From contig NIVC01003885.1 of NCBI GenBank assembly GCA_002269645.1, positions 1 through 64,000 on the forward strand: a stretch of DNA of 64,000 nucleotides, written 5' to 3'. Position numbers and translations under genes: made by a program. The DNA comes from Macrostomum lignano. Taxonomy: Eukaryota. The notes beneath the pieces were generated by a model that saw nothing but the letters and a program-made list of their open reading frames with translations, searched no databases and had not been told where the DNA came from. Positions 5,214-62,861 of the stretch are shown here, in pieces (positions within the stretch are counted from its first letter, which is position 1; each line of letters opens with the position of its first letter).

Positions 5214-5220
5214 TATAAAA
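5214..5220 (+). promoter_or_regulatory. TATA box of the WSC-PAN gene
   Basis: TATAAAA ~80 bp upstream of the ATG at 5297. Confidence 0.45.
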
Positions 5221-5296
5221 GAGTCCTATCTGACTGGAGATGCCGAACTGCCTACCACAAACTCAGCTGCTCAAAAACATCTCTCCGAGCAGTGAA

Positions 5297-20920: not shown

Positions 20921-20979
<59 letters not shown>

Positions 20980-20984
20980 GTCTA

Positions 20985-21077
<93 letters not shown>

Positions 21078-21128
21078 GTCTATCTGTCTGTCTGTCTGTC
21101 TGTGTCTATCTGTCTGTCTGTCTGTCTG

Positions 21129-21159
<31 letters not shown>

Positions 21160-21176
21160 GTCTGTCTGTCTGTCTG

Positions 21177-21209
<33 letters not shown>

Positions 21210-21218
21210 GTCTGTCTG

Positions 21219-21255
<37 letters not shown>

Positions 21256-21328
21256 TAGTGTCTGTCTGTGTCTGTCTGTCTGTCTTAGTGTCTGTCTGTG
21301 TCTGTCTGTCTGTCTTAGTGTCTCTCTG

Positions 21329-21375
<47 letters not shown>

Positions 21376-21396
21376 GTCTATCTGTCTGTCTGTCTG

Positions 21397-21453
<57 letters not shown>

Positions 21454-28191: not shown

Positions 28192-31100
28192 GAAAGCAGC
28201 AAGAGAAGGAAGAACAGACAAGCGAGTCAGAAACAGGAGACTATAAAGACTGAGATTAAAGAAGCTATGCAAGTTGAGATTAAATAAAATTTATGAAAAA
28301 GATAATAGATAACACAAAAATTTATTTGTCGACAGTAGGAAAAAACTTTTTTTACATTAAAAATTAGCTCACCTTCCGCCCAGACTCCTCCATCTCTTTG
28401 AGTCGTTTGCGCGCCGCCTTCAGCGCCTTCTTCCTCTCCAGCTCGGTGACGCGGCGTCTCTCGGCGGCGGCTTTCCTTCGCTCCGCCTTCTCCTCGTCCG
28501 TCAGGAAGTCCCAGCTGCGGCGCCGTTGCAGCTGCAGCTGCGCCTGGGATCTGAGAGGAGGATAAACAGGATGAGGGAATTCTGAAGTAGCGGTGTCATT
28601 TGTCTCAGTCCGTCTTATTTGTCATGATACAGTTCTGCATAAGCATAGGTGGTGAAATATACTTTTCGCGCTTGGATTCTTAATAGGCTCTTGCGCATAG
28701 CGTGTATGGACAGTTTTGATTATGCATCTTCATTGAATTTCTTCCCAATCTCATTTTTTCCTCCCTGTCTCTCTCACACTCTCTACCTCTCTTCCTGTCT
28801 GCCCTTCTCTCCCTCTCTCCATCTCCCCCTCTCTCCCCCTCTCTCCCTCTCCCCTTCTCTCCCTCTCTCCCCCTCTCCCCTTCTCTCCCTCTCTCCCCCT
28901 CTTCCCTTCTCTCCCTCTCTCCCCTCTTCCCTTCTCTCCCTCTCTCCCCCTCTCCCCTTCTCTCCCTCTCTCCCCCTCTCCCCTTCTCTCCCTCTCTCCC
29001 CCTCTCCCCTTCTACCTCCCCTCCCTCTCCCCCTCTCTCTCTTCCTCTCTACCTCTCCCCTTCTCTTACTCTCTCCCCTTCTCCTCCTCTCCCGCGCTGC
29101 CCCTCTCTCCCTTCCCCCCTCTCTCCCTCTCTACCTCTCCCCCTCTTTCCCACTCTCCCTGACTACCTCTCCCCTTTCTATGTTGTCCCTCTATCCCTCT
29201 CTCCTTCACTCCCTTTCTCCCTCTCCCCCCTCTGTCTCCCTCTCTCTCCCTCTCTATTTCTCCCCCTCTTTCCTTTGCTTCCTGACTTTACCGAGTCAAC
29301 TGAATGAGTTGACAGAGTTTGAGATTCTCAACCTCTCTCCGTCTCTTCACCTTCAATTATTCTTTATTGATTCCTTACGAAAACTTATTATCTTTAATTG
29401 ATAGATTTTCCTTGCAAATTTCATTTCAAAGTAAACAATGACTTTCTCAAGAACTATATGTATTTTCGAAATTGATAGCAGCGTTTAAATGCTAAAGAAT
29501 GTAGTGTACTAGTAGTACAAGCATAGGATAATAAATCTGTTCCTAAATCTGCAAGTACAACGTGTACTTTAAAAGTTAATATTTGACTAACGAGCGTAGA
29601 TACTACGAATATAAACTATGCATATTCAATTGACAGTTTATATATTATTTGAGCATAATTACAAAAAAATAAAACATTGGACAAGTTCGAGCTACTTAAT
29701 AAAACCGTTACATGTAGCTCGTACGTGATGAAACTTTTTTTCAAAAACTGTGAACTGTGTGTGCTCACGACGAGGGAACTTGAGTGTGCAATGGTTGATT
29801 TAAAAACGCTGGACTTCAATAAAAAAGCAATTAAGGTTCGATGAAAAGATTTAACTTCTGAGAAAAATGTTACCTGACAACTGGATCGATAAAAATTGAA
29901 CGGTATCTGTCTTCTAACTACCATTTGCCGCTCAAAAATGTATAACTATGGCTATATACCAGGCCTCAGCCAATCAGAAGACACCGCTGTATTGTCTATA
30001 TATTAGGCCTCAGCCAATAAGAAGACACCGCTGTATTGTCTATATACTAGGCCTCAGCCAATAAGAAGACACCGCTGTATTGTCTAGATACTAGGCCTCA
30101 GCCAATCAGAAGACACCGCTGTATTATCTAGATACTAGGCCTCAGCCAATCATAAGACACCCGCTGTATTGTCTATATAATAAGTCTCAGCCAATCAGAA
30201 GACACCACTGCATCGTCTATACAGCCTTAGCCAATCAGAAAACATCTATGTCTTTGCTAATAAATGACTCAAATCCTTTGTAACTGCATTAAAAAGCTGT
30301 AAAATGATTTTCTTTGAACTAAAAGAATTAAAAAAGAGATGGAAACAAAAGATCTATTTAAAAAAGCCCCTGTCTCCTAGTTGCACAACAAATACCCTTT
30401 CAGGCTCTGATTATCAAACGGATCGCCGGCACTGGTGCCGACTTCGGAAAAGTTCAGAGCGGCACTCTGTCGCGAATATCGACGAGAGGATTGACGTCGA
30501 GTGGCGACGTCAGCGTCTAGCGCTGAGCCAGGAGACATTCGCGGGTCCAGACTTTGGAGTCGGCGGCTGGCTGAGCTGTGGCGATGCTGTCTGACTCGTT
30601 GATAGTTTTGGTGCGAGAAGCAAATGTTTTTTGTGATTAATAACGACGGCTCACAACCCGAATGAAGCAAAAAGTAAGGTAAGGCAAGTACACTCTCTGA
30701 ACAGCGTCACAGTCACTGTACATGTAGTTTAAAACAAATAAATAAAAAAACTGGTAAATCGAACGTGTCTGCGATTATTCGGACGAAGTATTATTGACTT
30801 TCATCGCATGTTGCTTTGCAATAAAACACAGAATTATAACAAAAAAATGGTTTAAACAACAAAGCTGAAAAACAGGTTACAGCATTCATGCAAGTTTAGA
30901 ACTGTGTCTTTGGTGCTATCTAAATTGAATGACGCAAGCGAAATACCTGTAACACTTATCCCGGCGGTGTGCAAGATACGCGTAGCCACTCGATTTATAA
31001 CAACACGTTAGATATACCTTCAAGGGTTTTTACTCGTAAAAAGTTACCCAGAGGTCGCTTTCCGGTAAACGGGATTCGCCATTGATCACATAGAGGGTTC

Positions 31101-34100
31101 GGTTAATTACTGGAAACAGAGTGGCGCTGCGCGCAGTCACAGGAAGGTGAATGCTCGGTACTCTGGGGGAATACTACATGTATCACGACGGCTTCTGACA
31201 GTGATTAACGGCTCCGAAAACTGTCGATTGTTAGAAAATATTTGTCGACACCTGCGTTGAAACAAAATGATCAGAGAGAGGCTGCTTCCATTGTTGAGTG
31301 CAACTGTTTTGGGTTACTTTGATAGCTTCAATACCTAAAGTGTCTTAGGATGGAAGTGTCTCTATAGGTATAAAATTACCTGTTGATTTCTCGTGGGAAA
31401 GTTGAAACGAAATTTAAAATTGCTACATATAGCCCAGATAACTTTAACGACTCAACACCTCAGGGTCGTTTCGGGCTCGTGAGAACCACCACCAGATGAT
31501 TCAAGTGTTAAAAATATGCTGCCTGTTATTGTAATCATACTTAAAGCAATTAGGCTTCTATAGAAATAGTTTTATAGGTGCAATTTATATCCGAGAATAC
31601 ATTTCTAAATTGAAGTTCATTTAGTCAAATTTCTCACCTTTCCGGTTGAATTCGTTTGACAATAATCTTTCCGTTTTCGATGTACACTTGAATTTCGTCT
31701 GACGTCTTTGGCGGGCTGTCGGAATCGCGATGCGACACCGATGATCTGGATGAGTCAATGTGGACATTAGCAATATTATTTTTTGTTTGTATTTTAACCA
31801 ATATGCTATTTTTTGTGTCTCTCCAACTGAAAAATTTTTTTCATTTTCGCGAATCCGCACTTTTGAGAATGTGTTGGACACCTATAAAACCTACGCATTA
31901 CAGAATCCACACATAAAGGACTCCGACCCTCGGTTCCATTAAAACTTTACAATAGCAATGCGGCCCTCTCAATGTCGTGTCTCTTCTCTCCTCTCTCCCC
32001 TCTCCACCGGTTCCCTCTCTTCTCTCTCCCCTCTCTCCCCTCTCTTTCCCCCTCTCTCTTCTCTCCTCTCTCCCTTCTCTCATCTCTCCTCTTTTTTCTC
32101 ATCTTGTCTTGCTTCTTATCTCTTCTATTTCCTCTCTTTTCCTCTCTCATCTAGCACATAGCCATAAGCTGGATTCTTCATCCGGCCCTTGAGGTAAAAA
32201 ACTTTGCCGACCCCGACTTAAGAGAATATGTGAAACACCTTACAGAATCTACACTTTATAGAATCTACACATTACAGAATCTACACATTACAGAATCTAC
32301 ACATTACAGAATCTACACATTACAGAATCTACACATTACAGAATCTACACATTACAGAATCTACACATTACAGAATCTACACATTACAGAATCTACACAT
32401 TACAAATCGTCTAAACTCACTCCAGGAAATTTTTCACATCCTCCTTCAAGAAGCGCAACCAGGTGTCGCCCATACGGACCACCACCGAGTCCTGAGCTTT
32501 GGCGAACACCTTCGCCGGGACTGTGTCCTTCGACCGGCGTAGCGCATCCAGGATCAGCTGATTCTCACGCTTGTCCACCTTGACCGGCTGCGCGGCGCTC
32601 ACGTTCAGGTAGCGATTGAAGATGTTCCACGCGTGCCCAAGGCGCAGGAAGCGATCTGCGGTGCGTTCGTCTCGTCTGGAATATTCCTCCACCTGATTGG
32701 AGAGGGGAGGTGAGGAGACGCTGCAACCAGGTATGCTCGTAACACTGTTAAACGGGTGAGAAATCTTTGCAAAAAGTGACTCGACAACCCAGGTCACAAT
32801 CCTTGTTATCCAGGGACAAAACTGTCAAACAGGTATAACCCCGCATCCAACAGGTAATACTCCGTATCCAACAGGTAACACTCCGTATCCAACAGGTAAC
32901 ACTCCGTATCCAGTAGGTCACATCCCGTATCCAACAGGTAACACTCCGTATCCAACAGGTAACACTCCGTATCCAGTAGGTCACATCCCGTATCCAACAG
33001 GTAACACTCCGTATCCAACAGGTAACATCCCGTATCCAACAGGTAACACAACTATATAACAGGTAATACCTGTTGCAACAGGCATTTTCATTCATCAACA
33101 CATGTAGCACCACCATTCAACTTGACACATCATCTAATTAATGAATTTAAGTGCAACAGGAAAGGACAAAATCCATTAAACAACAGTGCCCTCGACTTCA
33201 AAGGAGAATATCTACAGAAGCGCGACAAAATTGAACTAAAAAATCACCTCCTGGAAGAACATCAAGCAGGCAAGCAGCTCCGGATCCCGATGTCGCATCT
33301 CCAGGAAGCTTCGAAACGGTCCGCCAGCGATGCGGTCGACTGTCAGAGCGTCCCTCAGCCGAGCCTGGAACGGTCGCGACGCCGAGACGGGCTTAGCGGC
33401 CAGGGCCGGCTGCTGCAGCTGCGGACCGCCTTTAGCTGACCGAATCCGGTCGTCCAGCTGGCGACCTCCGGCGCGCACCCGATCCCAGGACTCGGTGATG
33501 GCCAGGTTGTGCGCCAGGTCCGGCCGCACCGGCATGGAGTTGACCAACGACAGCGACGGGAAGATGGTCGACATGGCCGAGGCACGACGAGTGGCGTCGT
33601 TTAGCCAGGCCTGCTGCAGGTCTGAGAATGTCTGGCCTGTCAGCTCGCGTTCCTTGTGGATTATGTATCTGCAGCGCGGGTTGGGGTGAAATGCGGGAAT
33701 GTTCTGCTTAAGTGTGGCCTTATTTGTATAGTGAATATTGATACCCAACGTCAAAGGTACTAACGAAACCCACGTCTAAGGCACTAAACTCATGTCTAAG
33801 GCACTAAACTCCTGTCTAAGGCACTAAACTCATGTCTAAGGCACTAAACTCCTGTCTAAGGCACTAAACTCCTGTCTAAGGCACTAAACTCCTGTCTAAG
33901 GCACTAAACTCCTGTCTAAGGCACTAAACTCATGTCTAAGGCACTAAACTCCTGTCTAAGGCACTAAACTCCTGTCTAAGGCACTAAACTCATGTCTAAG
34001 GCACTAAACTCCTGTCTAAGGCACTAAACTCTGTCTAAGGCACTAAACTCCTGTCTAAGGCACTAAACTCCTGTCTAAGGCACTAAACTCCATCTAAGGC

Positions 34101-37100
34101 ACTAATCTCCTGTCTAAGGCACTAAACTCCTGTCTAAGGCACTAAACTCTGTCTAAGGCACTAATCTCCTGTCTAAACATCCTAAACTCTTGTCTAAGGC
34201 ACTAAACTCATGTCTAAACATACTAAACTCCTGTCTAAACATACTAAACTCATGTCTAAGGTACTAAACTCATGTCTAAACATACTAAACTCCTGTCTAA
34301 GGCACTAAACTCATTTAAACTAAACATACTAAACTCTTGTCTAAGGCACTAAACTCATTTCTAAACATACTAAACTCTTGTCTAAGGCACTAAACTCCTG
34401 TCTAAGGCACTTCATTTCTAAACATACTAAACTCTTGTCTAAGGCACTAAACTCCTGTCTAAGGCACTAACCTCATTTCTAAACATACTAAACTCCTGTC
34501 TAAGGCACTAAACTCATGTCTAAGGCACTAAACTCCTGTCTAAGGCACTAAACTCATGTCTAAGGCACTAAACTCCTGTCTAAGGCACTAAACTCATGTC
34601 TAAGGCACTAAACTCATGTCTAAGGCACTAAAATCAAATTTCCAAGTCTCAAAATGCCTGTCTAGAACGCCACAGGTTAGCAGCCGATGTTGTACTGCAT
34701 CTTTCTACCTACCTGGGCAGCCAATACGATCGGAGCCGTCGCAGCACGTCATACTGCGTTCGCAGCAGAATCGAATTCGCCTTCTGGTGGTCGTTAGCGG
34801 CATTGCGCATCTGCGCTTTGGCCTCCTCGGTGAGTCGCAGCCGGTACTTGTCCTGCAGGTCGCGCAGAAGTCGGCCTCGGGTCTGCCTGTTATCAGCGTC
34901 GCTGCGTTCCAACGCCGTGTCTTTGTAGAACTCGCAGTCCAGCCAGAAGTCCACCAGATGCAAGCCGGCTGTTGGTCGCAGGAATTCGAAGAACTCCTGC
35001 ACGCCCTGCCTGTTGGCCAGCATCAGCTCTTTTAGGCGATCGAACGGCAGGTTCTGCCGAGCTTCCAGGCCTTTCAAGTCGAGGCTGTCTCCCGCACCGC
35101 CAGTCTCGCCGGCTCGGGTGCTGAAGGACACGACGGCAGGGGCCTCCTGTAGGTCGCGCAGCAGATCGAAATCGGTAGACATGGGTAGCATAGCGAATTC
35201 CTTGGATGAGACGGTTGAGAATTCATTTTTAAGATTTTTTTCTGAGTGACTGTGCTCAGCCGCAGCTATTGCGCGGAGCATCTGAAGGCTGCGTACGGTT
35301 ATTGAGTCCAAGGACTGGGGGTCGCCACCCACAACCCTCAATTACTCCAGCTAATGTTGCCACCCATTTTACAGTTGGGTGAACTGAGCAATGCAGAGTT
35401 AACTGTCTTGCTCAAGGACACAAATTGTTTCGACGTTCGACGTTCCAACCACTAGCGTTTAATCGTGTTATAGGCTTAAATATTGGTATCATAACACCAT
35501 TTTGACCAAACGGGTATCATTGCGAATTTTCTAGGTTTAGAACTATTTATTACATTTTTTGCTCCTTGATTCTGGATTTAAATAAAGCGTGTTCTTAGCG
35601 AAGACTACACTTTGAAACTTTTTTACTTTAATTTGCTGATTTATTTTTACGTAAAGCATTCCAAGCACTCTACATCTCTTTATCCAAGGACTACTAGAGA
35701 AGAAGGAAAGGGAAATATGTTTCTTGAAAATTTGTTGTCCTTGGATAAAGTATCCTTGGAGTAGTCTTTGTCTATATCATGCTAGCGAATGCAGTTAGTC
35801 TTTCGAGAGCGAAATATTCTTGTGACCGTCTGACTGACTGCAAACATGTTTCTCGACCAATGTGCAGCCAAAGAAACAAGTTCTAAGTCATTTTGGCCAT
35901 TCATAAATGATTTTCCTGACATTCTAATATATTTTTATATCTTTTACCCTGGCGCACTTTAAGCGACATTGCCGCGCAACCGGCGAAAGGCGCGTTACTG
36001 CCCATTCCGCCGACTCTCCTGAGTAGGCACACAATCGCGCCGACACGCACAGGCACACACTCACACAGGAGTGTACAGCGGCCCCTAGCTTTATTCATCG
36101 CGTTAGACAGGTACGCTTCGCTGTGCCTTGGGGGTTGGCCCTCAAGGCCGTTAATTGCACGAGCAGAGTCTAGCCGAGATTTCAAATTAATATGACTTGC
36201 ACTTTATATCGAGCTTAGGCCACACCAAAGCGAGGCGCTAAACCACAGGGCTACGACCCCCACACTTTGCTAGACTTGAAAGTTTGAAAATATTGTTAGC
36301 AAATAAATTTCACACCTGGTAGTTGTGCGGCGCCGAGTAGGTTCGGCCATCGCCAGCCTGCTGCGACGCCTTCAAGCGTCGATGCTGTTGGATCCGACTC
36401 GGCGTCGCGGTGGATGCATCGATCGCCAGGCCGCTGACGCTGGCGTCAACAGCGCCAGTGGTGCCTGACTCGTCCAGATCGCCGGTGGTGTCGATGTCGC
36501 GCGGTCGTCGACGTCTTCGCCGCCGAGCTCCGCTGCTGCCGGCCTTGCCGGTCAGGCGGTCCGGCAAACTCTTGGCGTGAGTTGGCGGCCGGTTGGACAT
36601 GCCGCTGGACGAAGTCAAGTCCGTGGTGTTGTACTCGCCGTCCTCGTCTTGACTGTCTTCGAATTCTTCATCTTCGTCATCGTCGTCGTCATCAACGTCA
36701 GCGGAGGAGCCGTCGTCAGCGTCCGTATCGGTCAGCGAGCCCATGGAGCCTGGGTGAGGATTTTGTTAACACGGACAAGATGAAATGATGCAGAGGAGCC
36801 ATCCTCAATGTTTTGTTATAGTGAGGTTTTAAACTTTCAAATTCGTGTACTGGAGTAGCCAGGGATCAACAGCACGGATCGTAGTGCTCCATGCGTCTTT
36901 ATGGCGCGCCAACACATAGTGGCGCCAGCAAAAATGGCGCCAGCACCCAGTGGCGCCAGCACCAAGGGGCGCCAGCACCAAGGGGCGCCAGCACCAAGGG
37001 GCGCCAGCACCAAGGGGCGCCAGCACCAAGGGGCGCCAGCACCAAGGGGCGCCAGCACCAAGGGGCGCCAGCACCAAGGGGCGCCAGCACCAAGGGGCGC

Positions 37101-38082
37101 CAGCACCAAGGGGCGCCAGCACCAAGGTGCGCCAGCACCAAGGGGCGCCAGCACCAAGGGGCGCAAGCACCAAGGGGCGCCAGCACCAAGGGGCGCCAGC
37201 ACCAAGGTGCGCCAGCACCAAGGGGCGCCAGCACCAAGGGGCGCCAGCACCAAGGGGCGCCAGCACCAAGGGGCGCCAGCACCAAGGGGCACCAGCATCA
37301 AGTGTACAGCGGCCCTGACTTTCTCATAGTCCGAGTCTGACAATTTACGCCCACTCTCTGACTTGGAATTTGACCCTCAGGGGGGCGTGTGAATACAGGC
37401 CGTACGACGAACCCCCAGGTCAATTTTCGTGCACGAATTTTCATCTCAACTACTCGCACACCCTACTCAGTCATCTCAATTTTGAATTAAACACTCCCCA
37501 ACCCACCGGAAGTGCGGCTGTAGCCGCGCACAAAGGTGCCAGGTCGGGTGCCGATTTTTCTGGCATCAACTGGCCTGAGCAGCAGCTTGCAGAGCTTGTA
37601 CTCGCGGTAGAGCTCCGTTCTGGAATTAACCAATTGTAAAAATTAGTTTTGAGCTACAGGGGAATTATGCGATGTTACTCGATCGATTAAAGTACATGCA
37701 TATTGAGTAAGGCTCACTTGGTGAACAGTGGCAGTCGCTCATTCTGCGCCCAGGTCATGATTGTCTCCCTCTCATCGTCGGTGGCGCCGTACAGCGGCTC
37801 GGAGGAGTTGCTCCACTCGACCAGCGAGTCGTCAGCGGTGTCGACAATGCGAAACGTGCCCGTCAGTCGGTGATATTGAAGCACCTGGGGAAATGCCTGC
37901 ATTGTGGTGGGGAGAGACATCTTTGTAATAAAAGCAAGATCTGCAAACTCTGGAATAGAGTTGAATCAGTTCGACTAGAGTTCAACTCACGGGTAAGCTC
38001 AGAAAGGCGTTAAAGTAGTCCAGAAACATGTCATCATAGATGAGCATGTCCTCTAGATTTTCTAGGGCTTGTCGCCCACTCT
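11375..38082 (-). CDS. RGS22: RGS22-like multi-RGS-domain protein gene (~21 exons; ~1330 aa, or ~1750 aa with the cassette exon); true 5' end not identified
   Basis: All listed exons join with GT-AG sites and consistent phases. The N-terminus [30 protein letters not shown]...[31 protein letters not shown] resembles the RGS22 N-terminal region; four further RGS-like segments follow. Confidence 0.75.
11698..11887. mobile_element. MITE family rich in ACGTCG motifs (related copies ~12472-12609 and ~15650-15890)
   Basis: Imperfect terminal inverted repeats such as acccgaacagcaatgcgaca / cgtcggattgctgctggggt; shared gccgacgtcggatt subterminal motif. Confidence 0.45.
13720..13794 (-). CDS. RGS22-like alternative (proximal) terminal exon
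   Basis: ttttattcctag acceptor, phase 0, [24 protein letters not shown]; GC-rich island in an AT-rich intron. Confidence 0.5.
   Translation of the reverse strand, partial: EFAAREAGAEAATEVRAKTQPKLQ
15370..15524 (-). CDS. RGS22-like exon
   Basis: ttttccag / GTGAGT; (V)[16 protein letters not shown]...SLMDGIKWK; phase 1 to 0. Confidence 0.85.
16668..16857 (-). CDS. RGS22-like exon (C-terminal RGS domain, end)
   Basis: [18 protein letters not shown]...[22 protein letters not shown]; donor GTGAGT. Confidence 0.85.
17015..17352 (-). mobile_element. tRNA-derived CORE-SINE with (CAA)n-rich tail
   Basis: Minus strand: A box GTAGCCTAGCGG, B box GGTTCGATTCC, then tgtgtccttgagcaagacacttaac...ctgtaaaatggg resembling the MIR CORE; degenerate CAA tail. 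Confidence 0.8.
17489..17587 (-). CDS. RGS22-like exon
   Basis: [33 protein letters not shown]; phase 0-0; GTGAGG donor. Confidence 0.85.
17786..17977 (-). CDS. RGS22-like exon (C-terminal RGS domain, start)
   Basis: [25 protein letters not shown]...[15 protein letters not shown]; GTAAG donor. Confidence 0.85.
19545..20050. repeat. ~63-bp minisatellite with an internal (GGGGTTGGGGTTGA)n G-rich expansion (~19690-20030)
   Basis: Direct reading; flanking units contain gactcgctagccaatcag. Confidence 0.9.
20485..20610 (-). CDS. RGS22-like exon (probable)
   Basis: [42 protein letters not shown]; phase 0-0; weak donor. Confidence 0.55.
20908..21508. repeat. (TCTG)n microsatellite, ~600 bp
   Basis: Direct reading; source of the spurious SVCL ORFs. 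Confidence 0.95.
21718..21831 (-). CDS. RGS22-like exon
   Basis: ctttccag acceptor; [38 protein letters not shown]. Confidence 0.75.
22151..22168 (-). CDS. RGS22-like 18-nt microexon (VASKKG)
   Basis: catttccag / GTTGCTTCTAAGAAAGGA / GTAAGT; phase 0-0. Confidence 0.55.
22322..22646 (-). CDS. RGS22-like exon (RGS domain)
   Basis: [30 protein letters not shown]...[19 protein letters not shown]...LLFSNFWQ; GTGAGT donor. Confidence 0.85.
23162..23253 (-). CDS. RGS22-like exon
   Basis: [31 protein letters not shown]; phase 0 to 2; GTGAGT donor. Confidence 0.8.
23898..25148 (-). CDS. Large Ser/Pro/Glu-rich symmetric exon of the RGS22-like gene (cassette, or terminal at stop 23862)
   Basis: ctaacttacag acceptor in frame with the 413-aa ORF; candidate GTAAAA donor gives 1251 nt, phase 0-0. 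Confidence 0.65.
28373..28550 (-). CDS. RGS22-like exon (charged coiled coil)
   Basis: [59 protein letters not shown]; GTGAGC donor. Confidence 0.85.
28750..29270. repeat. Polypyrimidine (CT/CCCT) low-complexity tract
   Basis: Direct reading. Confidence 0.9.
29955..30240. repeat. Minisatellite, 44-bp unit, ~7 copies, each with CCAAT
   Basis: taggcctcagccaat.agaagacaccgctgtattgtctata repeated. Confidence 0.9.
30396..30590 (-). CDS. RGS22-like exon
   Basis: [27 protein letters not shown]...DNQSLK; phase 2-2 fits both neighbours. Confidence 0.7.
31638..31745 (-). CDS. RGS22-like exon
   Basis: [35 protein letters not shown]; phase 2-2; GTGAG donor. Confidence 0.75.
31915..32216 (+). mobile_element. 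hAT-like MITE with CT-rich core
   Basis: 5' part matches 545-600; 3' end cggcccttgaggtaaaaaactttgccgacccc is a CAGGGGTCGGCAAA-type TIR. Confidence 0.6.
32246..32403. repeat. 16-bp tandem repeat TACAGAATCTACACAT, ~10 copies
   Basis: Direct reading. Confidence 0.95.
32421..32692 (-). CDS. RGS22-like exon (RGS domain)
   Basis: [40 protein letters not shown]...[24 protein letters not shown]. Confidence 0.85.
32830..33070. repeat. 21-bp tandem repeat AACAGGTAACACTCCGTATCC, ~10 copies
   Basis: Direct reading. Confidence 0.95.
33248..33668 (-). CDS. RGS22-like exon
   Basis: [14 protein letters not shown]...[26 protein letters not shown]; phase 2 to 0. Confidence 0.85.
33775..34630. repeat. 20-bp tandem repeat TGTCTAAGGCACTAAACTCC, ~40 copies
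   Basis: Direct reading. Confidence 0.95.
34713..35281 (-). CDS. RGS22-like exon (RGS domain)
   Basis: [35 protein letters not shown]...[18 protein letters not shown]; GTAGGT donor. Confidence 0.85.
35309..35428 (-). mobile_element. Truncated copy of the CORE-SINE at 17015-17352
   Basis: Matches 17155-17277 (caaggactggggg...ccattttacag...ctcaaggacacaaattgtt). Confidence 0.8.
36040..36262 (-). mobile_element. Second tRNA-derived SINE family, copy A
   Basis: Minus strand starts ggggtcgtagccctgtggtttagcgcctcgctttggtgtg (tRNA-like head); body matches 41363-41448 plus 42042-42180 and 56985-57120. Confidence 0.6.
36316..36749 (-). CDS. RGS22-like exon (acidic low-complexity linker)
   Basis: [29 protein letters not shown]...SAPHNYQ; phase 1 to 0. 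Confidence 0.8.
36920..37295. repeat. 16-bp tandem repeat GGGCGCCAGCACCAAG, ~22 copies
   Basis: Direct reading; source of the spurious [16 protein letters not shown] ORFs. Confidence 0.95.
37507..37619 (-). CDS. RGS22-like exon
   Basis: [23 protein letters not shown]...SRTS; phase 2 to 1 links both neighbours. Confidence 0.85.
37718..37896 (-). CDS. RGS22-like exon (N-terminal domain)
   Basis: [19 protein letters not shown]...[19 protein letters not shown]. Confidence 0.85.
37991..38082 (-). CDS. RGS22-like 5'-most detected coding exon
   Basis: [26 protein letters not shown] followed by a GTGAGT donor. Confidence 0.85.
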
Positions 38083-43706: not shown

Positions 43707-44572
43707 ATGAACTTGCGGCCAGTGTGCCCCAATGGCCAGTACTTACCGCCGCAGTTTTATGCCGCCTCGGCGGCTGCAGCCGCAGCAGCTGGCGCCCCAT
43801 TGCCCCTAGCAACAGTTGCTAGCAGCATCCCTGGCGGTCTAGTTGCCATGCCAACAGTGACAAGCGCTGCTGGTCTGCAGTATGTCATGCTGCCTCAGCA
43901 GCAGCAGCAACTGCAACATCAGCAGCAACAACAGCTGATGCTTCAGCAAGCTCAGGCTGCGGCCGCTGCTGCCTCGCTGTACAACCCAGCTGGAGGACAC
44001 GGGATGCTGACTAATCCCCTTCATCAGCTGATGCTAGCCCAGGCCCAGCAGCAGCAGCAGCAACAGCAACAGCAGCAACAGTTTCTGCTAGCCCAGAACT
44101 ACTATGCGCAGCAGCTGGCTGCCGCAGCGGCAATCTCTCAGGCCCAGCAGCAGCAGCAACAGCAGCAGGCACTGCAGTTACAGCAGTTTCACCAGCTTCA
44201 GCAGCACCTGCAGGCGCAGCATCTGCTTCATCAGCATCATCTGCAGCAGCAGCAGCTGCATCAGCAGCGCAATCATCATTCGTCATCGTCAATGAAAGGC
44301 TACAGCGGAGGTCCTGGCACGCCCGGCCATGCGTCAGCCGTGTCCAGCGCAGTCACGACTCCCCGACCGCAGTCCTCCATTGACGTGGCCGGAGCTGCGG
44401 CCGCCACCGCTGCTGCTGCTTCTGCTGCGGCTTCGACTTCAACAGCAGCTGAGTTGCCGAGCTCCATCTCTGATGAGGACGGCTTAAAGTCCTCGCCGGA
44501 GCAGCAGCAGCAACAGCAGTCTACGAGATGGCAGCGGCTTGTAGATGACAATGGATGCGTTTCGTATCGCAG
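43707..44572 (+). CDS. MBD5: MBD5/MBD6-like protein, exon 1 (polyQ/polyA region + first part of the MBD)
   Basis: 288 codons rich in Q/A/H ending RWQRLVDDNGCVSYR; phase-2 donor AG/GTAATT. Confidence 0.75.
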
Positions 44573-45244
44573 GTAATTTATTAAATCATTTCTGTTATGC
44601 CTGCATATTCTATATATAATACAGAGCCTCTATTATTGAATTGGACTGTAAATCTGTCTATTTCTTTTGTATATCCTTATCTCCGTTTATATTCATACTC
44701 CATAGAGACTAACTTATATACATTTTTTGGATAAATAATATCGTCTGTCTTTGTTTATCGGCTTGTTATTGCGTAAGTTCTTTTCTTTGGATGAACCAAC
44801 TTGTAATTGTGTTGTTTATCTGTGCTTAGAGTAATAACATATGAGACAGGTTATTATTATAAGTTATCTTCAAGTTGGCGCTAAAATTGATCTTGAATTT
44901 GGCGCTAAAATCAGTCTTCTTTTGCGCTTAAGTCTATGTTCGTTTGGCGCTAAAGTTAATATTCAATTTGGCGCTTAAATTAATAATCTTTTGTTAGTAT
45001 ATAAGACATATTTTCTTGACTTATCTAAATTCAAATTTCGGTCGAATCAATTTAGGATTTTTTTAAGTTGCTTTTTTCACTTTTGTAGTCGCTACCGTCT
45101 ACTGTTATGAGTAGGGCGGATAGCGCAGTGTTAGTTTTACTTTCAGGCATTTTAGGTTCACTCTCAGTCTCCACACTCAAGGCTTTGGAATGGTAATGTT
45201 ATAATTCTTCTTTCATTTCCTGCAGCTCTTATAATTGGCGCATT

Positions 45245-46940
45245 GGGGATCTGGGTGTATTGGGGATCTGGGTGTATTAAGGATCTGGGTGTATTGAGAA
45301 TCTGGGTGTATTGGGGATCTGAGTGCATTGAGGATCTGGGTGTATTAAGGATCTGGTGTATTGAGAATCTGGGTGTATTGGGGATCTGAGTGCATTGAGG
45401 ATCTGGGTGTATTGGGGATCTGGGTGTATTGAGAATCTGGGTGTATTGAGAATCTGGGTGTATTGGGGATCTGAGTGCATTGAGGATCTGGGTGTATTAA
45501 GGATCTGGTGTATTGAGGATCTGGGTGTATTAAGGATCTGGTGTATTGAGAATCTGGGTGTATTGGGGATCTGGGTGTATTGAGGATCTGGGTGTATTAA
45601 GGATCTGGTGTATTGAGAATCTGGGTGTATTGGGGATCTGAGTGCATTGAGGATCTGGGTGTATTAAGGATCTGGTGTATTGAGAATCTGGGTGTATTGG
45701 GGATCTGAGTGCATTGAGGATCTGGGTGTATTAAGGATCTGGTGTATTGAGGATCTGGGTGTATTAAGGATCTGGTGTATTGAGAATCTGGGTGTATTGG
45801 GGATCTGGGTGTATTGAGGATCTGGGTGTATTAAGGATCTGGTGTATTGAGAATCTGGGTGTATTGGGGATCTGAGTGCATTGAGGATCTGGGTGTATTA
45901 AGGATCTGGTGCATACATGCGCAACAGTCGGCCGAGTCGGCCGATCCGGCCGACTGATTTGGCAGCCAACCAAGGAAGTCGCAAAAATGCCCATCCAAAA
46001 AATACCCACGCAGTAGTACTAAGTAGCTGACGAGGCATTTTTGCCTGATAAGACAGTCATAGTTACTCCCGCCGTTTACCCAAAGTTGCGTTAATTTTGC
46101 TTTAGGGTTTTTTTACATGTAAGTCGCATTTTTGGCCAAAAACTACGTCGCATTTTTGTTAAAACTAAGTCGCACGGCCGACCGAATTTTGGACGTTGCG
46201 CATGTATGATCTGGTGTATTGAGAATCTGGGTGTATTGGGGATCTGAGTGCATTGAGGATCTGGGTGTATTAAGGATCTGGTGTATTGAGAATCTGGGTG
46301 TATTGGGGATCTGAGTGCATTGAGGATCTGGGTGTATTGGGGATCTGGGTGTATTGAGAATCTGGGTGTATTGAGAATCTGGGTGCATTGAGAATCTGGG
46401 TGTATTGAGAATCTGGGTGTATTGGGGATCTGAGTGCATTGAGGATCTGGGTGTATTAAGGATCTGGTGTATTGAGAATCTGGGTGTATTAAGGATCTGG
46501 TGTATTGAGAATCTGGTGTATTGGGGATCTGAGTGCATTGGGGATCTGGGTGTATTGAGAATCTGGGTGTATTGAGAATCTGGGTGTATTGAGAATCTGG
46601 GTGCATTGAGAATCTGGGTGTATTGAGAATCTGGGTGTATTGGGGATCTGAGTGCATTGAGGATCTGGGTGTATTGGGGATCTGGGTGTATTGAGAATCT
46701 GGGTGTATTGAGAATCTGGGTGCATTGAGAATCTGGGTGTATTGAGAATCTGGGTGTATTGGGGATCTGGGTGTATTGAGAATCTGGGTGTATTGGGGAT
46801 CTGAGTGCATTGAGGATCTGGGTGTATTAAGGATCTGGTGTATTGAGAATCTGGGTGTATTAAGGATCTGGTGTATTGAGAATCTGGTGTATTGGGGATC
46901 TGAGTGCATTGGGGATCTGGGTGCATTGAGGATCTGGGAT
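45245..46940. repeat. 16-17-bp satellite GGATCTGGGTGTATTGA with ~67-bp higher-order repeat, split into two blocks by a MITE
   Basis: Direct reading. Confidence 0.95.
45912..46208. mobile_element. hAT-type MITE, 297 bp
   Basis: Perfect 14-bp TIR CATACATGCGCAAC; perfect 8-bp TSD ATCTGGTG. Confidence 0.9.
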
Positions 46941-48264
46941 CAATTCCATGGGCACATGGGATTCCATAATCTTGCATATCAACAATTATTTGTCAAAATA
47001 GTTCTGAAATGTGTTGAAAATCTGTGTATTAAAACTAATAATTTTACAACTAATGCCTATTTTATATGCTACTTAATCGTATTGCATCACCCTTTGGGGC
47101 CGCCGAGGTTCGCCAGCAGTGAGTGTCTTGACTTGCACAACTATATTTATTAATATTATATTAAATTATATTTTGTGTTCGTTCCGTTTTTTGGCCTTGG
47201 TAAAGATATTTAATTTAAGCAGAGTTTTTAAAAAAAAAGTACATTGTGTCCCGGCTATCCCTTGCAATCAATAAATGCTACTCAAAGCAGGACTCGGCAG
47301 CATTCAGTCGGCTCAGCAGCATTCGGTACGCTCTCTAACTGCTAATTAATTATGTTAATTAATTAATTAAAGCAGCTCTTTCTTGCCACGAGAAGGGTTG
47401 AGACCAAGTGGCCTTGGTTTGCCAACAAAGAAATCTGTCTTTTAAATATCCTTACAATACTACTTAATATATATATCGTTCATTTCTATGTATAAAAGAC
47501 ACACAAACAGCGTAGTGGCTTGTTGATTTCATTTTCTCAATATTCATCATATATATGCATTTGTATTTATTGTCAAAGATTGAAACGCGTAGTGTGACTC
47601 TTTGCACCCAACAAGCTCTCTTTATGTGTTTGTTTACTAATCAGTTTTTTACCAACTTTTTACTGACCGTTGCTACCTGCCTATAATTTTGGTAATACTG
47701 CCTTTGTTGGATTAATTGAATTTGGTCGTGTAACTTTATAATTATTTATCCTAGTGGTACACTGCAGCTCTTGACTTTTGTGAATGATATAACAAGCATT
47801 ATAATTTATTAATTAATCACTACACTGCCGACACACGCCGCACACTTTGCGACTTTGGCCCAGTTAATTACGTACTTAACATAATCGGATTAGAACTAAG
47901 TGTTTTTAAGTGTGCGCTTCAAGTAGTTCTTTTATTGTGTGTGCTTGCGCGTATGGTCTTCCCAAACCACCAACTCCCAGGCATTCGCAATATTCCCTCC
48001 GCATATAATTATTCAAATTGTTTGTTATATTTTGCTTTTTCTTTCATTTCTTAAGTGTGTGACACTTAGGTTTTGCTGCAATCTGCTTATCAAATCAGTC
48101 ATCTCCAGGTATTTTTGGCCTCGAGAGACTGACCTGTTTGTTTCCTTCTGTTGAGCCATAGAAATCTATCATCTTGACCCATAGGAAACCTTTGACTTTA
48201 GGTTTAAGACCCTTTTGTAGTCAGTGCTTCTGCTAGTGGGTCAATGTGCTGGGTCAAGATCCCC

Positions 48265-48830
48265 GCTCCTTGACCCTCATTCAGTCAGTGGGTCAGGAAT
48301 CCCCAAACATTGACCCTCATTTAGCCAGTGGGTCAGGAATCCCCACACCTTGACCCTCATTCAGTGGGTCAGGAATCCACACACCCTGACCCTCATTCAG
48401 TCAGTGGGTCAGGAATCCCCACACCTTGACCCTCATTCAGTCAGTGGGTCAGGAATCCACACCATGACCCTCATTCAGTCAGTGGGTCAGGAATCCCCAC
48501 ACCTTGACCCTCATTTAGCCAGTGGGTCAGGAATCCCCACACCTTGACCCTCATTCAGTCAGTGGGTCAGGAATCCCCACACCTTGACCCTCATTCAGTT
48601 AGTGGGCCAGGAATCCCACACCTTGACTTCATTCAACCAGTGGGTCAAGAATCCACACCATTGACCCTCATTCAGTCAGTGGGTCGGGAATCCACACCCT
48701 TGACCCTCATTCAGTCAGTGGGTCAGGAATCCCCACACCTTGACCCTCATTTAGTCAGTGGGTCAGAAATCACCACACCTTGTCCCTCATTTAGCCAGTG
48801 GGTCAGGAATCCCCACACCTTGACCCACCG
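48265..48830. repeat. Minisatellite, ~39-40-bp unit, ~14 copies
   Basis: ttgaccctcattcagtcagtgggtcaggaatccccacacc repeated. Confidence 0.95.
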
Positions 48831-48980
48831 GCAGATAGTTTCACTATGGCGATTCACATCTGCTCAACTCTCTGTCCTCAATCGTCTGCTCTCCGGCCAC
48901 TCTCACAATCTTAAATCCTCCCACCTGCTCCCTGTCAACTCGCCCAGTCATTAATCTGATTTCCCACTTGACTCCGTCAG

Positions 48981-49404
48981 CTGCTCAGGCGAGCTTTTGT
49001 CAAGCGCCGACGCCGTGCGTGGCTACCTCAGCCGCCCCGATGCCTGCCTGTGCGCCCTGCCGCTGGCCTGCGACCTTCGTCAACGACGTTCTCGACAGCG
49101 ACGTCGACAGGCCGACGAGCAGCAAGACGGCGGCGCCGAGACTTCAACGGTAGAGGACGCGGCCGAAGACTCCGATGAAGCAGTTACGCTGCCAGAGGAT
49201 TCCGCCGAAGCTCTGGAAGCCGCCAGACGGCTGTTCAACTTCCGGCCAGACAGTCCCGCTCTGTGGCCGCCGCCGCTGCCAGCTGAGGAGCAGCAGAGGC
49301 TGGAGACTTGCCGGAGCGCCAAGCGGCTGGAGTTGAAGCGGGCAGCGGACTCGGCTGTCGCGGCTGAGGATGAAGAGGCGGCGAAGAAATCAAAGGAGGC
49401 TGAG
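48981..49404 (+). CDS. MBD5: MBD5/MBD6-like protein, exon 2 (rest of the MBD with insertion)
   Basis: (S)CSGELLSSADAVRGYLSRPDACLCALPLACDL...RRLFNFRP; phase 2 to 0. Confidence 0.75.
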
Positions 49405-49440
49405 GTGGGTCATCTCTGACAAGTATTTACTAGTGTAGGG

Positions 49441-49637
49441 CAGGGGTCGGAAAAGTTTTTAATCTCGAGGGAGGAGAAAGAGAGAGGAGAGAAGAGGAGA
49501 GGAGGGGAGAAATGAGAGAGAGGAGAAGAGAAGAATGGAGAGGAGAGGAGAAGAGAGGTGATAAGGAGAGATGCGAGAAAGAAGAGAAAAAGCTGAGAAA
49601 AGCGGGCCGGATAGAGGAGAGTCTTTGCCTTCCCCTG
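49441..49637 (-). mobile_element. hAT-like MITE with AG-rich core (inverted copy of the 533/31915 family)
   Basis: caggggtcggaaaagttttt ... ctttgccttcccctg. Confidence 0.6.
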
Positions 49638-49753
49638 ATATCGGGGGGGGGGGGGCACTAATAGACACGCTCATACGCTGGGGTACACTGTGTGCGGAGG
49701 TTCGTGTTGAGCAAGAGTCGAACAATTAGCATCTGTGTTCCATTCCTTTTCAG

Positions 49754-50272
49754 ACAGCCGAACCAGACCCCAGCGACGCGGCGCAGGATCTGTCATCTGG
49801 GGCAGCTGCTGCTGGGTCATGCCAAGCAGAATCCGGTGCTGCAGCAGAAGAGAAGCTCAACGAAGAAGAACCGGATGACCTTGAAGCCAGCGCCGAGAGC
49901 GTCAATGTGATCGCCCCGCGCCGGGTTGCCACTCCGGAGTCCCGCCTGCTCGTAGCTGGCAGCTCCGTCACCTGGGTGTCCGGCCCCCTAGCAACGCAGA
50001 CCGCTCCCGTGCAGGCCTGGGCCGGCTCTGCTAGCCGGCATCGCCACGCTTCCAACGGCTGTTTTCCTGGCGCCCCGTCGATGCCGCTGCAGCAGCCGCC
50101 GCTGGGACGTCAGCGAGCTCCGTCCGCTCCGGATGGTCGGCCAACGCAACTCGCCGTTGTGATGTCGCCAAAATCGCTGATGAGCAGGGAATTCCTGCCT
50201 GCTGCAGTCGCCCTGCCAGAGGCTGCGGCTGATGGAGCGCAGCTGGGACCGGATGGGGATGCAAATCCCTGA
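49754..50272 (+). CDS. MBD5/MBD6-like protein, exon 3 (low complexity; apparent stop)
   Basis: cctttttcag-type acceptor (cattccttttcag), phase 0, open for 173 codons; total model 602 aa. Confidence 0.65.
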   Translation, partial: TAEPDPSDAAQDLSSGAAAAGSCQAESGAAAEEKLNEEEPDDLEASAESVNVIAPRRVATPESRLLVAGSSVTWVSGPLATQTAPVQAWAGSASRHRHASNGCFPGAPSMPLQQPPLGRQRAPSAPDGRPTQLAVVMSPKSLMSREFLPAAVALPEAAADGAQLGPDGDANP

Positions 50273-50864: not shown

Positions 50865-51452
50865 TAAGACAGACAGACAGACAGACAGCAAGACCAACTT
50901 TAAGAAGGACACTGAAACAGACACTGAGACAGACACTGAGATAGACACTGAGACAGACACTGAGACAGACACTGAGACAGACACTAAGACAGACACTGAG
51001 ACAGACACTGAGACAGACACTGAGACAGACACTGAGACAGACACTGAGATAGACACTGAGACAGACACTGAGACAGACACTGAGACAGACACTAAGACAG
51101 ACACTAAAACAGACACTGAGACAGACACTGAGACAGACACTAAAACAGACACTGAGACAGACACTGAGACAGACACTAAAACAGACACTAAAACAGACAC
51201 TGAGACAGACACTGAGACAGACACTAAGACAGACACTAAAACAGACACTGAGACAGACACTAAAACAGACACTGAGACAGACACTGAGACAGACACTAAA
51301 ACAGACACTGAGACAGGCTCTAAGACAGACACTGAGACAGGCTTTAAGACAGACACTGAGACAGGCTCTAAGACAGACACTGAGACAGGCTCTAAGACAG
51401 ACACTGAGACAGGCTCTAAGACAGACACTGAGACAGGCTTTAAGACAGACAC
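50865..51452. repeat. 12-bp tandem repeat ACAGACACTGAG, ~45 copies
   Basis: Direct reading; source of the spurious TETD and SVSV ORFs. Confidence 0.95.
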
Positions 51453-57669: not shown

Positions 57670-59171
57670 GAACACCATCTTCAAGAGGCACTGTTCGCCA
57701 GCAGCAGTTCAAGTCAACAGATCTTCACGCCATCCCCATACCCGAGATTGACGAGAATGCCAACAAGTTTAAGAGTTTGTACCACGCACTGTGCCGCGAG
57801 GGCACATTCCGCATGCCTAAGCAGTACATCCGCGTGCAGGCGTTCTCCTTGGATCACGGCGATAATGAAACACCAGATTACGATCTGGACAGCGAGGACG
57901 AGGCCTGGCTATCAGCCTCGAAGCTCAGCTTGCCACCAATCGATCTGGAACGAATGCTGGAACAGTTGGAACGGTACAGCGATCACACTGTTGTCAGCTT
58001 GAATGAGGCCAAGGCTCTGTTGAAAAAAGATGACGGATTAACTACAGCCGTGTACGATTATTGGCTAGCTAAGCGGCTTAAGCACGGCCAACGGTTGAGT
58101 CTGGCTATCAAAGCCGATCGGAGAGACGGCTCGTCGAACAATGACCCGTATGTGGCGTTCCGGCGCCGTACAGAGAAGATGCAGACTAGAAAGCACAGGA
58201 AAAATGACGAGGCCAGCTATGAGAAGATGCTGCGCCTTCGCCGCGACATGGACCGGGCCTGTTCCCTCATTGAACTGCTGGTCAGGCGCGAGGAGACCAA
58301 ATCCGCTCTGTTAGACACCGAACTGCGCGTCTTCCAACGTCGCTGGTCGGCTCGCGATTTTGACGCCAGCCAGCTGCAGGCTGCCGCCGTTGCTGCCGCG
58401 GCCGCTGCTGCCGCTAAAAAGTCTGCAGCAGCAGCATCAGCAGCGGCCGCTTCCTCATCCTGGCAGCAGCAGCATCAATTGAATCACCATCAGCAACAGC
58501 ATCAACAGTCAGCGGCGCATCAACGCGGCTCCACAGCCAAGCGGGCGAGGAGGCGGCCGCCACCGTTGCCAACTCCGCCCGAAGTTGCAGCCGCTGAAGC
58601 CGCCGCCGCCGCCGCCGCTCCTCCCTTGTTTGTCGACGATGATTCTTTACTGCCTGGCGGTGACAACGGCGGTCGATTTGTCTGGTGCAGGCGTCGGGTT
58701 GGCGCGGTGTACGCGCCAGCCAAGCCGTTGACCGACGCTGAAGACTCTGCAGCGTTGCCACCGTCGGGAACTCAGCCCAGATCGGCTTTCGCTGGCGTCT
58801 ACGGACGCCGAATGTTCAGCCTGACCCGACTGCCCTGCGTTGTTGGCTCCGAGTCGTCAACAGCATCTGCATCCTCCTGTCATCTGTCTTCCTCGGCCGG
58901 CTCGCGTCATTGCCGACCCTTAGCGGCCTATGTCGGTTTGCGGCTGGGCCGCGGCGGGCGCCTGCTGATTGACAGGCTGTCCGGGCCGCCAGGTGTGGAC
59001 GCCTACCTGTCCGGCTGGGAGGCCCGTCAGTCTGGCCTTGAGCTGCCAGACGCTCCGCCAGCCACCGTGTGCGCCCACTCTGGCGAACTGGTGGAAGAAG
59101 ATCCTTTGTTCGATCTGCGACTGCCAGCCTACGAGCTGGCCGCCACCTCAAACAATGGCACTGTTGGATAA
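57670..59171 (+). CDS. EPC1: Enhancer of polycomb homolog, exon 2 (1-nt frameshift near 57698)
   Basis: EHHLQEAL, then in a shifted frame QQQFKSTDLHAIPIPE...FRMPKQYIRVQ...PDYDLDSEDEAWL...DPYVAFRRRTEKMQTRKHRKNDEASYEKML (EPcA domain). Confidence 0.92.
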
Positions 59172-61664: not shown

Positions 61665-62200
61665 TAACACTTCTCTCCAAGATCTGATTCTTTTCTGTCC
61701 CAGATCTGACTCTTCTCTCCAAGATCTGACTCTTTTCTGTCCAAGATCTGACTCTTCTCTCCAAGATCTGACTCTTCTGTCCAAGATCTGACTCTTCTCT
61801 CCAAGATCTGACTCTTCTGTCCAAGATCTGACTCTTCTCTCCAAGATCTGACTCTTTTCTGTCCAAGATCTGACTCTTCTGTCCAAGATATGACTCTTTT
61901 CTGTCCAAGATCTGACTCTTCTCTCCAAGATCTGACTCTTCTGTCCAAGATCTGACTCTTCTCTCCAAGATCTGACTCCTCTGTTTTCCAGATTGACTCT
62001 TCTCTCTTCCATATCTGACTCTTCTCTCTCCCATATCTGACTCTTCTCACTTCCATATCTGACTCTTCTCTCTCCCATATCTGACTCTTCTCTCTCCCAT
62101 ATCTGACTCTTCTCTCTCCCATATCTGACTCTTCTCACTTCCATATCTGACTCTTCTCACTTCTATATCTGACTCTTCTCACTTCCATATCTGACTCTTT
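61665..62200. repeat. ~20-bp tandem repeat TCCAAGATCTGACTCTTCTC and variants
   Basis: Direct reading. Confidence 0.95.
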
Positions 62201-62861
62201 TAGCCAAAGTCTACCTGGCGAGGTGTGAATTTCACACTCGGTTCAAAATTTCGCATTTCGAATCGAAGTACAGAATCAGAACACGATGAAAATTTTCGAG
62301 CATGGACTTTAGGTTTCGAGCTTATTTAAAGGAAGTAAATGAATAAGTGTACACAGTATGTTATCAGTATGAGGTCTCATCCCGAAATGCATGTGCTCCC
62401 TGAATTCTCCTCGTTTGGGGATCTTTATTGTGAGTTTTGTGATCTATTGTGATCTTTATTTTTTTTTGTATTTCTATCTATGTGACTCATGATTTCAGAA
62501 AAATTACAGCTGAACAGGTCGATTTTCATCAATCAGATCAGAAATTTTTCAATTGGTATATATTGTGACTATACATCTATAAGAAATTGCTTGATGCTAT
62601 GTTAGAGGATTAAATTAATGCGAGCACTCCAAAAACATGCCTTTTGCAAAGGTCAAACTGGATTTTCGACTTGAAATGCATTTTGTATTGGTAGATTATG
62701 CATTGTAGCCGTTGAATTCCAGTGCGCTGCCGCCTAGCTGCCACCGCAGCTCCGACTGTCTGGGTTGCGTCTTCCGCGTCTTTGAGCCGGATGGGCTGAA
62801 GTTCTGTGCCCGCTGAAGTGGCGAGCATGTAGTGAGGTTGAGTGGGTCTCGATGAAACTGT

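Follow-up and report, generated by a model that had tools for sequence, protein, structure and literature searches.

Within the 64,000 nucleotides analysed here (positions 1 to 64,000, forward strand, of contig NIVC01003885.1 in the Macrostomum lignano assembly GCA_002269645.1; hereafter the window) there is probably a spliced gene for a methyl-CpG-binding domain (MBD) of the type found in the vertebrate proteins MBD5 and MBD6 and in Drosophila Six-banded (SBA). The domain is split by a long intron, and it carries a coding insert of 49 residues just after the loop with which members of this family normally contact their partner. A probability of about 0.77 can be attached to this reading, that is, to a real spliced gene for an MBD5/6/SBA-type domain with a coding insert. 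As regards descent, membership of the family has good support. The gene, which occupies 43707-50272 of the forward strand, is real and has until now been half-annotated, and its predicted product of 602 residues is a mostly disordered protein rich in Q, A and E, of which the MBD is the sole folded module.

Gene structure

An earlier note on this DNA had proposed that the domain is present in no single open reading frame (ORF) and comes into view only when position 44572 is spliced to position 48981. This is borne out, as the join is in frame, uses GT-AG sites and restores a serine codon that is split AG/C. Exon 1 ends with TCG TAT CGC AG/gtaatt and exon 2 begins with ccgtcag/C TGC TCA GGC, such that the reading frame over the junction is ...NGCVSYR-S-CSGELLSS... 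and the joined peptide is STRWQRLVDDNGCVSYRSCSGELLSSADAVRGYLSRPDACLCALPLACDL. The last 16 codons of exon 1 (44526-44572), RWQRLVDDNGCVSYR plus AG, provide strands beta1-beta2 of the MBD. When exon 3 is added, again through GT-AG sites, the 602-residue product of the earlier note is reproduced, with each of the three exons having only one open frame of the three (Table 1). Residues 1-272 of this product are polyQ/polyA low-complexity sequence and the MBD corresponds to about residues 273-395, while a Pfam scan of the exon 3 product is without any match.

Table 1 Coordinates of the gene and of the features within its MBD (window positions)
Feature	Position	Strand	Description
Coding exon 1	43707-44572	+	288 codons and 2 bases; ATG at 43707; from translation and frame
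Intron 1	44573-48980	+	4408 bp, phase 2, gtaatt...ccgtcag; from sequence and Tandem Repeats Finder (TRF)
Coding exon 2	48981-49404	+	Rest of MBD (beta3, helix alpha1, partner-binding loop, insert, FNF hairpin) and charged tail
Equivalent of the ASXL-binding motif (12 residues, 60-71 in human MBD6)	49045-49080	+	C L C A L P L A C D L R; from alignments
Insert	49084-49230	+	In-frame 49 codons, RRSRQRRRQADEQQDGGAETSTVEDAAEDSDEAVTLPEDSAEALEAARR; Arg-rich then acidic; boundaries uncertain by a few codons
Hairpin motif L-F-N-F-R-P, C-terminal in the MBD	49231-49248	+	F74, N75 and F76 in invariant or near-invariant columns
Intron 2	49405-49753	+	349 bp, phase 0, GAG/gtgggt...ttttcag/ACA; GA-rich repeat inside (TRF)
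Coding exon 3	49754-50272	+	172 codons and TGA (50270-50272); acidic, Ala/Pro-rich tail

Intron 1 is, as had been described, a repeat-filled intron of 4.4 kb. It contains three tandem arrays that are unrelated to one another, with 5 copies of a 24-bp unit (44869-44985), 99 copies of a 17-bp unit (45242-46938) and 15 copies of a 40-bp unit (48250-48826), all from TRF. Its GC fraction of 0.42, and that of 0.50 in intron 2, compare with 0.60-0.69 in the exons. The window is unusually rich in minisatellites, with at least 12 unrelated arrays of 4-44 bp units, and a repeat-filled intron is therefore normal for the source genome. Further arrays are found, for instance, at 19696-20031, 20909-21509, 28771-29273, 33774-34632, 36906-37302, 50908-51452 and 61670-62201, and a pile of overlapping ORFs at 36906-37302 is explained by the GC-rich 16-mer array at that site.

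Part of the gene has been predicted before. A public predicted fragment of 275 residues (UniParc UPI0007A1829D) is 100% identical to the window product but is missing exon 1, in that it opens with CSGELLSS, where the complete codons of exon 2 begin (48982), and ends with ...PTQLA at 50155, in the middle of exon 3. It makes the same exon 2-exon 3 join, with the junction reading KSKEAETAEPDPS. The fragment looks like a prediction made on an older contig that was bounded by the flanking repeat arrays.

Family membership of the domain

How is a domain of this kind to be recognised when it is so divergent? A peptide of the human MBD5 MBD that the earlier note had given, and which is essentially correct against one database representative, scores 21.1 bits on the Pfam MBD family PF01429, where the gathering threshold is 21 bits. 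This peptide served as bait only, and retrieved real vertebrate MBD5/6 proteins. In a blind scan of the window's full set of 2746 six-frame peptides, a vertebrate-only profile constructed from five of the retrieved proteins places exon 2 at the top (E 0.0026); it gives the spliced domain 30.1 bits, and 39.4 bits once the insert is taken out. A small family alignment was then run with HMMER against 1.84 billion representatives, which gave 519 relatives, and 139 distinct MBDs from this search were made into a profile from which the window sequence was left out. With this profile the spliced domain reaches 39.5 bits (conditional E 8e-14), increasing to 50.2 bits without the insert, and in a six-frame scan of the 64 kb exon 2 alone is the top match (21.6 bits, E 2.2e-5), compared to a maximum score of 14.8 bits in 60 block-shuffled windows.

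The two halves of the domain are also found separately. In a six-frame scan with an N-terminal half-profile the top match is the last 13 codons of exon 1, WQRLVDDNGCVSY (E 0.013), and the top matches of the two half-profiles, at the end of exon 1 and the start of exon 2, lie on one strand, in the correct order and in compatible phases. Two independent best matches in the right order and with compatible phases are therefore not the product of chance. The profile match covers 61 profile positions, CxC and FNF included, and identity to the MBDs of vertebrate MBD5 and MBD6 is about 33-40%, with W25, R27, Y36, S38, G41, L44, Y53, L54, C60, C62, L64, F74, N75 and F76 all kept in the window protein. 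The assignment to the MBD5/6 type in the earlier note is thus upheld, both by these scores and by an intron whose position and phase are common to fish MBD5. The proposed check with HMMER has a divided outcome, as the family-specific profile recognises the domain and Pfam MBD does not.

Outside the MBD little else of the family is to be seen. No PWWP domain is found in the 602-residue protein by Pfam, or anywhere in the window by tblastn with 168 family proteins as queries, and a search of the window for insect sba motifs likewise finds none. The earlier note had observed an internal MBD, behind about 270 residues of polyQ/polyA, and no PWWP. Both observations stand, the low-complexity region having 272 residues, but they do not represent an oddity, as this is the norm for many invertebrate members, in which the MBD is internal (positions 200-740) after low-complexity sequence and of which several are without a PWWP, Drosophila SBA being one such member.

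Intron positions shared with relatives

The position of intron 1 provides a second line of comparison. In the MBD5 locus of a snailfish (Liparis) the MBD is split by two introns, the first of which, GTA TAC ATC AG/gtaaga...gtgtgcag/T CCC AGT GGC, is in phase 2 and lies inside the AGY serine codon before PSG. Intron 1 of the window has the position, the phase and the codon type (AG/Y Ser) of this intron, so that the comparison of intron phase with vertebrate MBD5 that had been proposed gives the same serine codon in the same phase 2. Intron 1 is at an ancestral position common to vertebrate MBD5. The second snailfish intron, CAC AAG/gtaatg...ccccag/GTG TTT AAC TTC, is in phase 0 between K72 and V73 (HK/VFNF). 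The ends of the exon-only ORFs from five other vertebrate MBD5/6 genes coincide with both of the snailfish intron points. The window has no counterpart of this second vertebrate intron; a MAFFT alignment instead places the 49-residue excess exactly at this site.

In an insect-like locus the whole MBD is within one ORF, with no intron at the serine codon, and both ancestral MBD introns can therefore be lost, as they have been in this lineage. This ORF (3001-5331 of the locus; contig ENA ERZ25767047) encodes a canonical sba-type MBD together with a 690-residue Q/H-rich N-terminus, without interruption.

The partner-binding loop

What does an MBD of this type bind? The MBD of MBD5 and MBD6 has as its target the C-terminal PHD finger of ASXL1-3, and it makes the BAP1 complex more stable; binding needs the 60-71 stretch of MBD6 and the pair K61/C66, the K61A/C66A double mutant of human MBD6 abolishes ASXL1 binding, and the Drosophila orthologue, SBA, is purified together with Asx and Calypso (Tsuboyama et al. 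2022, PMC9523997). According to a 2024 preprint, Cys60 and Cys62 complete a zinc site in common with the PHD, the DNA-binding L1 loop is missing from MBD5/6 and their MBDs do not bind methylated DNA (bioRxiv 10.1101/2024.12.08.627434). The description of the window domain as methyl-binding in the earlier note can thus be kept as a name only. The beta1-beta2 hairpin of the window domain, WQRLVDDNGCVSY, is of the same length as that of fish MBD5, short and without the L1 loop of MBD1-4, and the 9-residue extra loop that MBD4 has against the family profile is absent from it.

Within the loop itself CxC is kept as C-L-C at 49045-49053, in columns that are Cys in 139 of 139 relatives. Against this has to be set a series of observations that weigh against the reading advanced here. 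K61, which is Lys in 139/139 relatives, is replaced by Leu; G63 (137/139) and P67 (135/139) are both replaced by Ala; and C66, Cys in 138/139, is Leu in the gapless alignment or else is kept with a 2-residue insertion, such that the two positions changed in the non-binding MBD6 mutant are among those affected. Outside the loop P39 has become Cys and P22 Ser, at positions kept in 135-139 of the 139. The window protein therefore does not have the intact 12-residue ASXL-binding motif and is, in these alignments, a clear family outlier in its partner-binding loop. PF01429 gives no match even at E<10, be it to the 602-residue product, to the domain by itself or to the domain without its insert, although of 53 relatives 47 match it at E<0.01. 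A PDB sequence search with the domain gives no match, the PDB apparently holding no MBD5/6 structure according to searches with the MBD5 peptide of the earlier note and the family profile, and outside the MBD there is no similarity to any of 168 relatives. No orthologue with the same insert is retrieved by a word-indexed search, which was saturated by low-complexity sequence and returned only the public fragment; a domain-only search of the same kind returned nothing, missing even that fragment, which is identical over 120 residues, and so cannot be read as the absence of orthologues.

Could the gene be a decaying duplicate of a canonical sba/MBD5-6 gene, a young pseudogene or a paralogue under relaxed selection, in which the MBD is eroding, the insert is a neutral gain of low-complexity sequence and the protein, if made, does no work for the H2A deubiquitinase PR-DUB? 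The loss of K61, G63, P39, P67 and P22, with C66 lost or shifted, at positions kept in 135-139/139 elsewhere is consistent with such a history, as are the missing Pfam match, the lack of any other family motif in the window, the lack of a close homologue in the word-indexed searches and the shortness of the product, which has 602 residues compared to 1700-2500 in many insect relatives. On the other side, 602 codons are open across three exons, in the sole open frame and with canonical splice sites, and nine strictly invariant core or zinc residues (W25, R27, Y36, L44, Y53, C60, C62, F74 and F76) are all in place. The predicted core has confidence values above 90, the measured slices of exons 2 and 3, including that of the insert, have exon-like GC, and an independent public prediction spans exons 2-3. 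A duplicate in decay is unlikely, and a real spliced gene of the family is preferred.

The insert

The most unusual feature of the gene is found between the CxC and the FNF motifs, which are 60 residues apart in the window protein. The earlier note had described an insert before RRLFNFRP, Arg-rich then acidic, of about 45 residues. Its place and composition are as described and its size is actually 49, from the difference between 60 and 11 residues. Among the best 150 of the 519 relatives, all 141 full-length MBDs have a CxC-to-FxF spacing of exactly 11 residues, so that the inserted loop is indeed unusual, with the proviso, to be added to the points on the other side, that the best 150 favour canonical sequences and that the other 369 could include relatives that bear an insert. 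In the MAFFT alignment the insert appears as a single 49-column gap in all relatives.

The insert might, in principle, be no protein sequence but an intron that was missed or is retained, or a segment subject to alternative splicing, where intron 2 lay ancestrally; the mature loop would then be of normal length. The site is exactly that of the phase-0 intron of fish MBD5 (AAG/gtaatg...ccccag/GTG TTT AAC), and removal of the insert adds about 10 bits to the profile score. Yet the 96 frame-keeping GT/GC-AG pairs of the region 49040-49250 all lack both a consensus donor and a polypyrimidine tract, and the only ones to excise most of the insert use the donor TTC/GTCAAC. The insert is a multiple of three in length and free of stop codons, and the public prediction reads through it. 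A 147-bp slice at 49090-49236, offset from the insert by 6 bp downstream, has an exon-like GC fraction of 0.64, compared to 0.42-0.50 in the two real introns, and the single-ORF MBD of the insect-like locus indicates that intron 2 is not universal. The insert is coding and no credible intron could remove it, which makes an intron at this site very improbable.

With respect to origin, CGACAG and CGACGT units recur in the 5' part of the insert, and an in-frame low-complexity expansion is therefore suggested, which would also be the simplest route. Exonisation of the ancestral phase-0 intron is a speculative alternative, for which no relic GT/AG is found in phase at the insert.

Predicted structure

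An AlphaFold2 (AF2) model was calculated on a 54-sequence family alignment and is dependent on that alignment, which counts among the points on the other side. In this model the core (model residues 8-40) has local confidence values (pLDDT) of 92-95, with strands at 9-12 and 18-21 and a helix at 31-38, and the order of strand, strand, strand, helix is that of a bona fide avian MBD6 control. The insert is modelled as a helix (51-71), a coil and a second helix (94-106) at pLDDT about 60-80, and the FNF segment (101-110) has a value of about 86. In Foldseek the model is matched first by MBD/TAM domains (SETDB2, BAZ2B), with MBD3 and MBD4 among the matches, but none of these is significant (best E 0.59), a further point on the other side, and the bona fide MBD6 control itself reaches E 7.5e-3 at best. 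The family profile links to the solved domains of MBD4, MBD3, MBD2 and BAZ2B.

A chance resemblance, in which a WW-like WQRxVDxNG string lies beside low-complexity coding sequence and there is no MBD, would be in keeping with the ITCH WW domains that the MBD5 peptide of the earlier note picks up in the PDB through GWxRxxDxNG, with the WW domains among the Foldseek matches of the MBD6 control and with the missing Pfam MBD match, but it is effectively refuted by the match over 61 profile positions with CxC and FNF, by the halves being independent top matches, by the shuffled windows scoring below it, by the intron position and phase common to fish MBD5 and by the lack of a second Trp-Pro or of any Pfam WW match. 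A WW domain as such was also considered and set aside: it requires two Trp about 20-22 residues apart and then a Pro, and only the first strand of the window domain is WW-like.

Function and significance

By analogy with the family, the domain would not be expected to read methyl-CpG, given that the L1 loop is missing family-wide. The alpha1-FNF loop would instead dock on the atypical PHD finger of ASXL/Asx, with CxC completing the joint zinc site, and this docking would recruit the protein to, and stabilise, the Calypso/BAP1-Asx/ASXL H2A deubiquitinase (PR-DUB). The window copy appears to keep its hydrophobic core along with the two cysteines of the zinc site and to have a remodelled partner loop, with a probably helical segment of 49 residues, Arg-rich then acidic, placed just after it. 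From the sequence, the likeliest identity of the protein is an sba orthologue that evolves fast, or a lineage-specific paralogue that does so.

Does this copy still bind Asx? As residues of the ASXL loop are lost, K61 included, binding to PR-DUB cannot simply be assumed. Binding of Asx/PR-DUB by analogy with its relatives is a tentative proposition, with odds somewhat short of even, and in this copy it may be altered, weakened or co-evolved. A naturally rewired MBD5/6 module, with a docking loop that is without its invariant Lys and has an Arg-rich/acidic helical hairpin where an ancestral intron lay, is unlikely, and could take two forms: one where Asx is bound differently and possibly in a regulated manner, and one where the protein has left PR-DUB and the Arg-rich helix serves a new partner, for example nucleic acid.

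The interface between MBD5/6 and the PHD finger of ASXL is lost in ASXL-truncation cancers and syndromes, and between flies and humans the partner loop hardly varies. A protein that has the zinc cysteines without K61, and a 49-residue insert besides, hence offers a natural test case for the features of the loop that Asx binding requires. Neither single-ORF scans nor Pfam reveal the MBD, nor does the public fragment, whose start at exon 2 leaves out the first two strands; only with exon 1 joined on does a nameless low-complexity protein become identifiable as a factor of the PR-DUB family. The value of the finding is at present modest, as it concerns one divergent gene predicted from sequence.

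Other features of the window

A long exon at 57777-59171 (+) encodes a homologue of Enhancer of Polycomb (EPC1/E(Pc)), with a match to PDB 8xvg_M at E 2e-60 and a Pfam EPL1 match. It is about 7.5 kb downstream of the MBD gene and on the same strand, and the proximity of these chromatin-regulator genes is probably a coincidence. An ORF at 34709-35341 (-) contains an RGS domain (Pfam PF00615, E 1.4e-5) and is likely an RGS-family exon, although a PDB sequence search gives no match for it. At 17282-17351 (-) there is an Rfam tRNA match of 30.1 bits (threshold 29 bits) that is not called by ARAGORN and that may be a tRNA-derived repeat.

A scrap that resembles the MBD loop, at 15592-15708 (-), scores 15.8 bits, just above the shuffle maximum of 14.8, and was rejected as probably due to chance. 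CKC and the third Cys are retained, but the scrap is interrupted by two stop codons and shortened by a 3-residue deletion; the context is AT-rich, and there is no N-terminal half of an MBD nearby. It may alternatively be a decayed relic of a canonical copy.

Comparison with known systems

The window domain can be compared, firstly, with the canonical domains of MBD1-4 and MeCP2 (PF01429) and the TAM/MBD domains of BAZ2A/B and SETDB1/2. With these it would share, according to the model, the order of strand, strand, strand, helix and hairpin, but unlike them it is without a Pfam match and an L1 loop and has a far longer loop between alpha1 and the hairpin. The likeness to WW domains is confined to the GWxRxxDxNG-like first strand.

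With vertebrate MBD5 and MBD6 the domain has in common the short beta1-beta2 hairpin without an L1 loop, the CxC zinc ligands Cys60/Cys62 and the phase-2 intron in the serine codon before (P/C)SG. The differences are that the vertebrate MBD is N-terminal (residues about 17-85), that MBD5 has a C-terminal PWWP, that the 12-residue ASXL-binding motif is intact in vertebrates, and that where vertebrates have the phase-0 intron at K72/V73 the window gene has 49 extra codons.

The comparison with Drosophila SBA (dMBD5/6), a subunit of the Calypso-Asx PR-DUB, is of particular relevance, since Asx/Calypso binding by its MBD is experimental (PMC9523997), whereas the window protein is known from its sequence. 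The SBA MBD comprises residues 238-308 (bioRxiv 10.1101/2024.12.08.627434) and reads, in a published gBlock, LAPGWRRLTNNNEVAYISPSGKTLRTQFQIKDYLLTQGTCKCGLPCPLRPEYLFDFNAQVP. It has K61, G63, C66 and P67 and the 11-residue spacing, which the window protein has not kept, C66 being lost or shifted, and the closest SBA-like sequence available for comparison, the Drosophila-type fragment P0084, has no similarity to it outside the MBD. Within the domain, in contrast, the two have the same pattern: in both an internal MBD (238-308 in SBA, about 273-395 in the window protein) follows a Q-rich N-terminus, and in both it is built on WxRL at strand 1, SxSG, YL, CxC followed by x-L-P, and an aromatic-x-aromatic hairpin.

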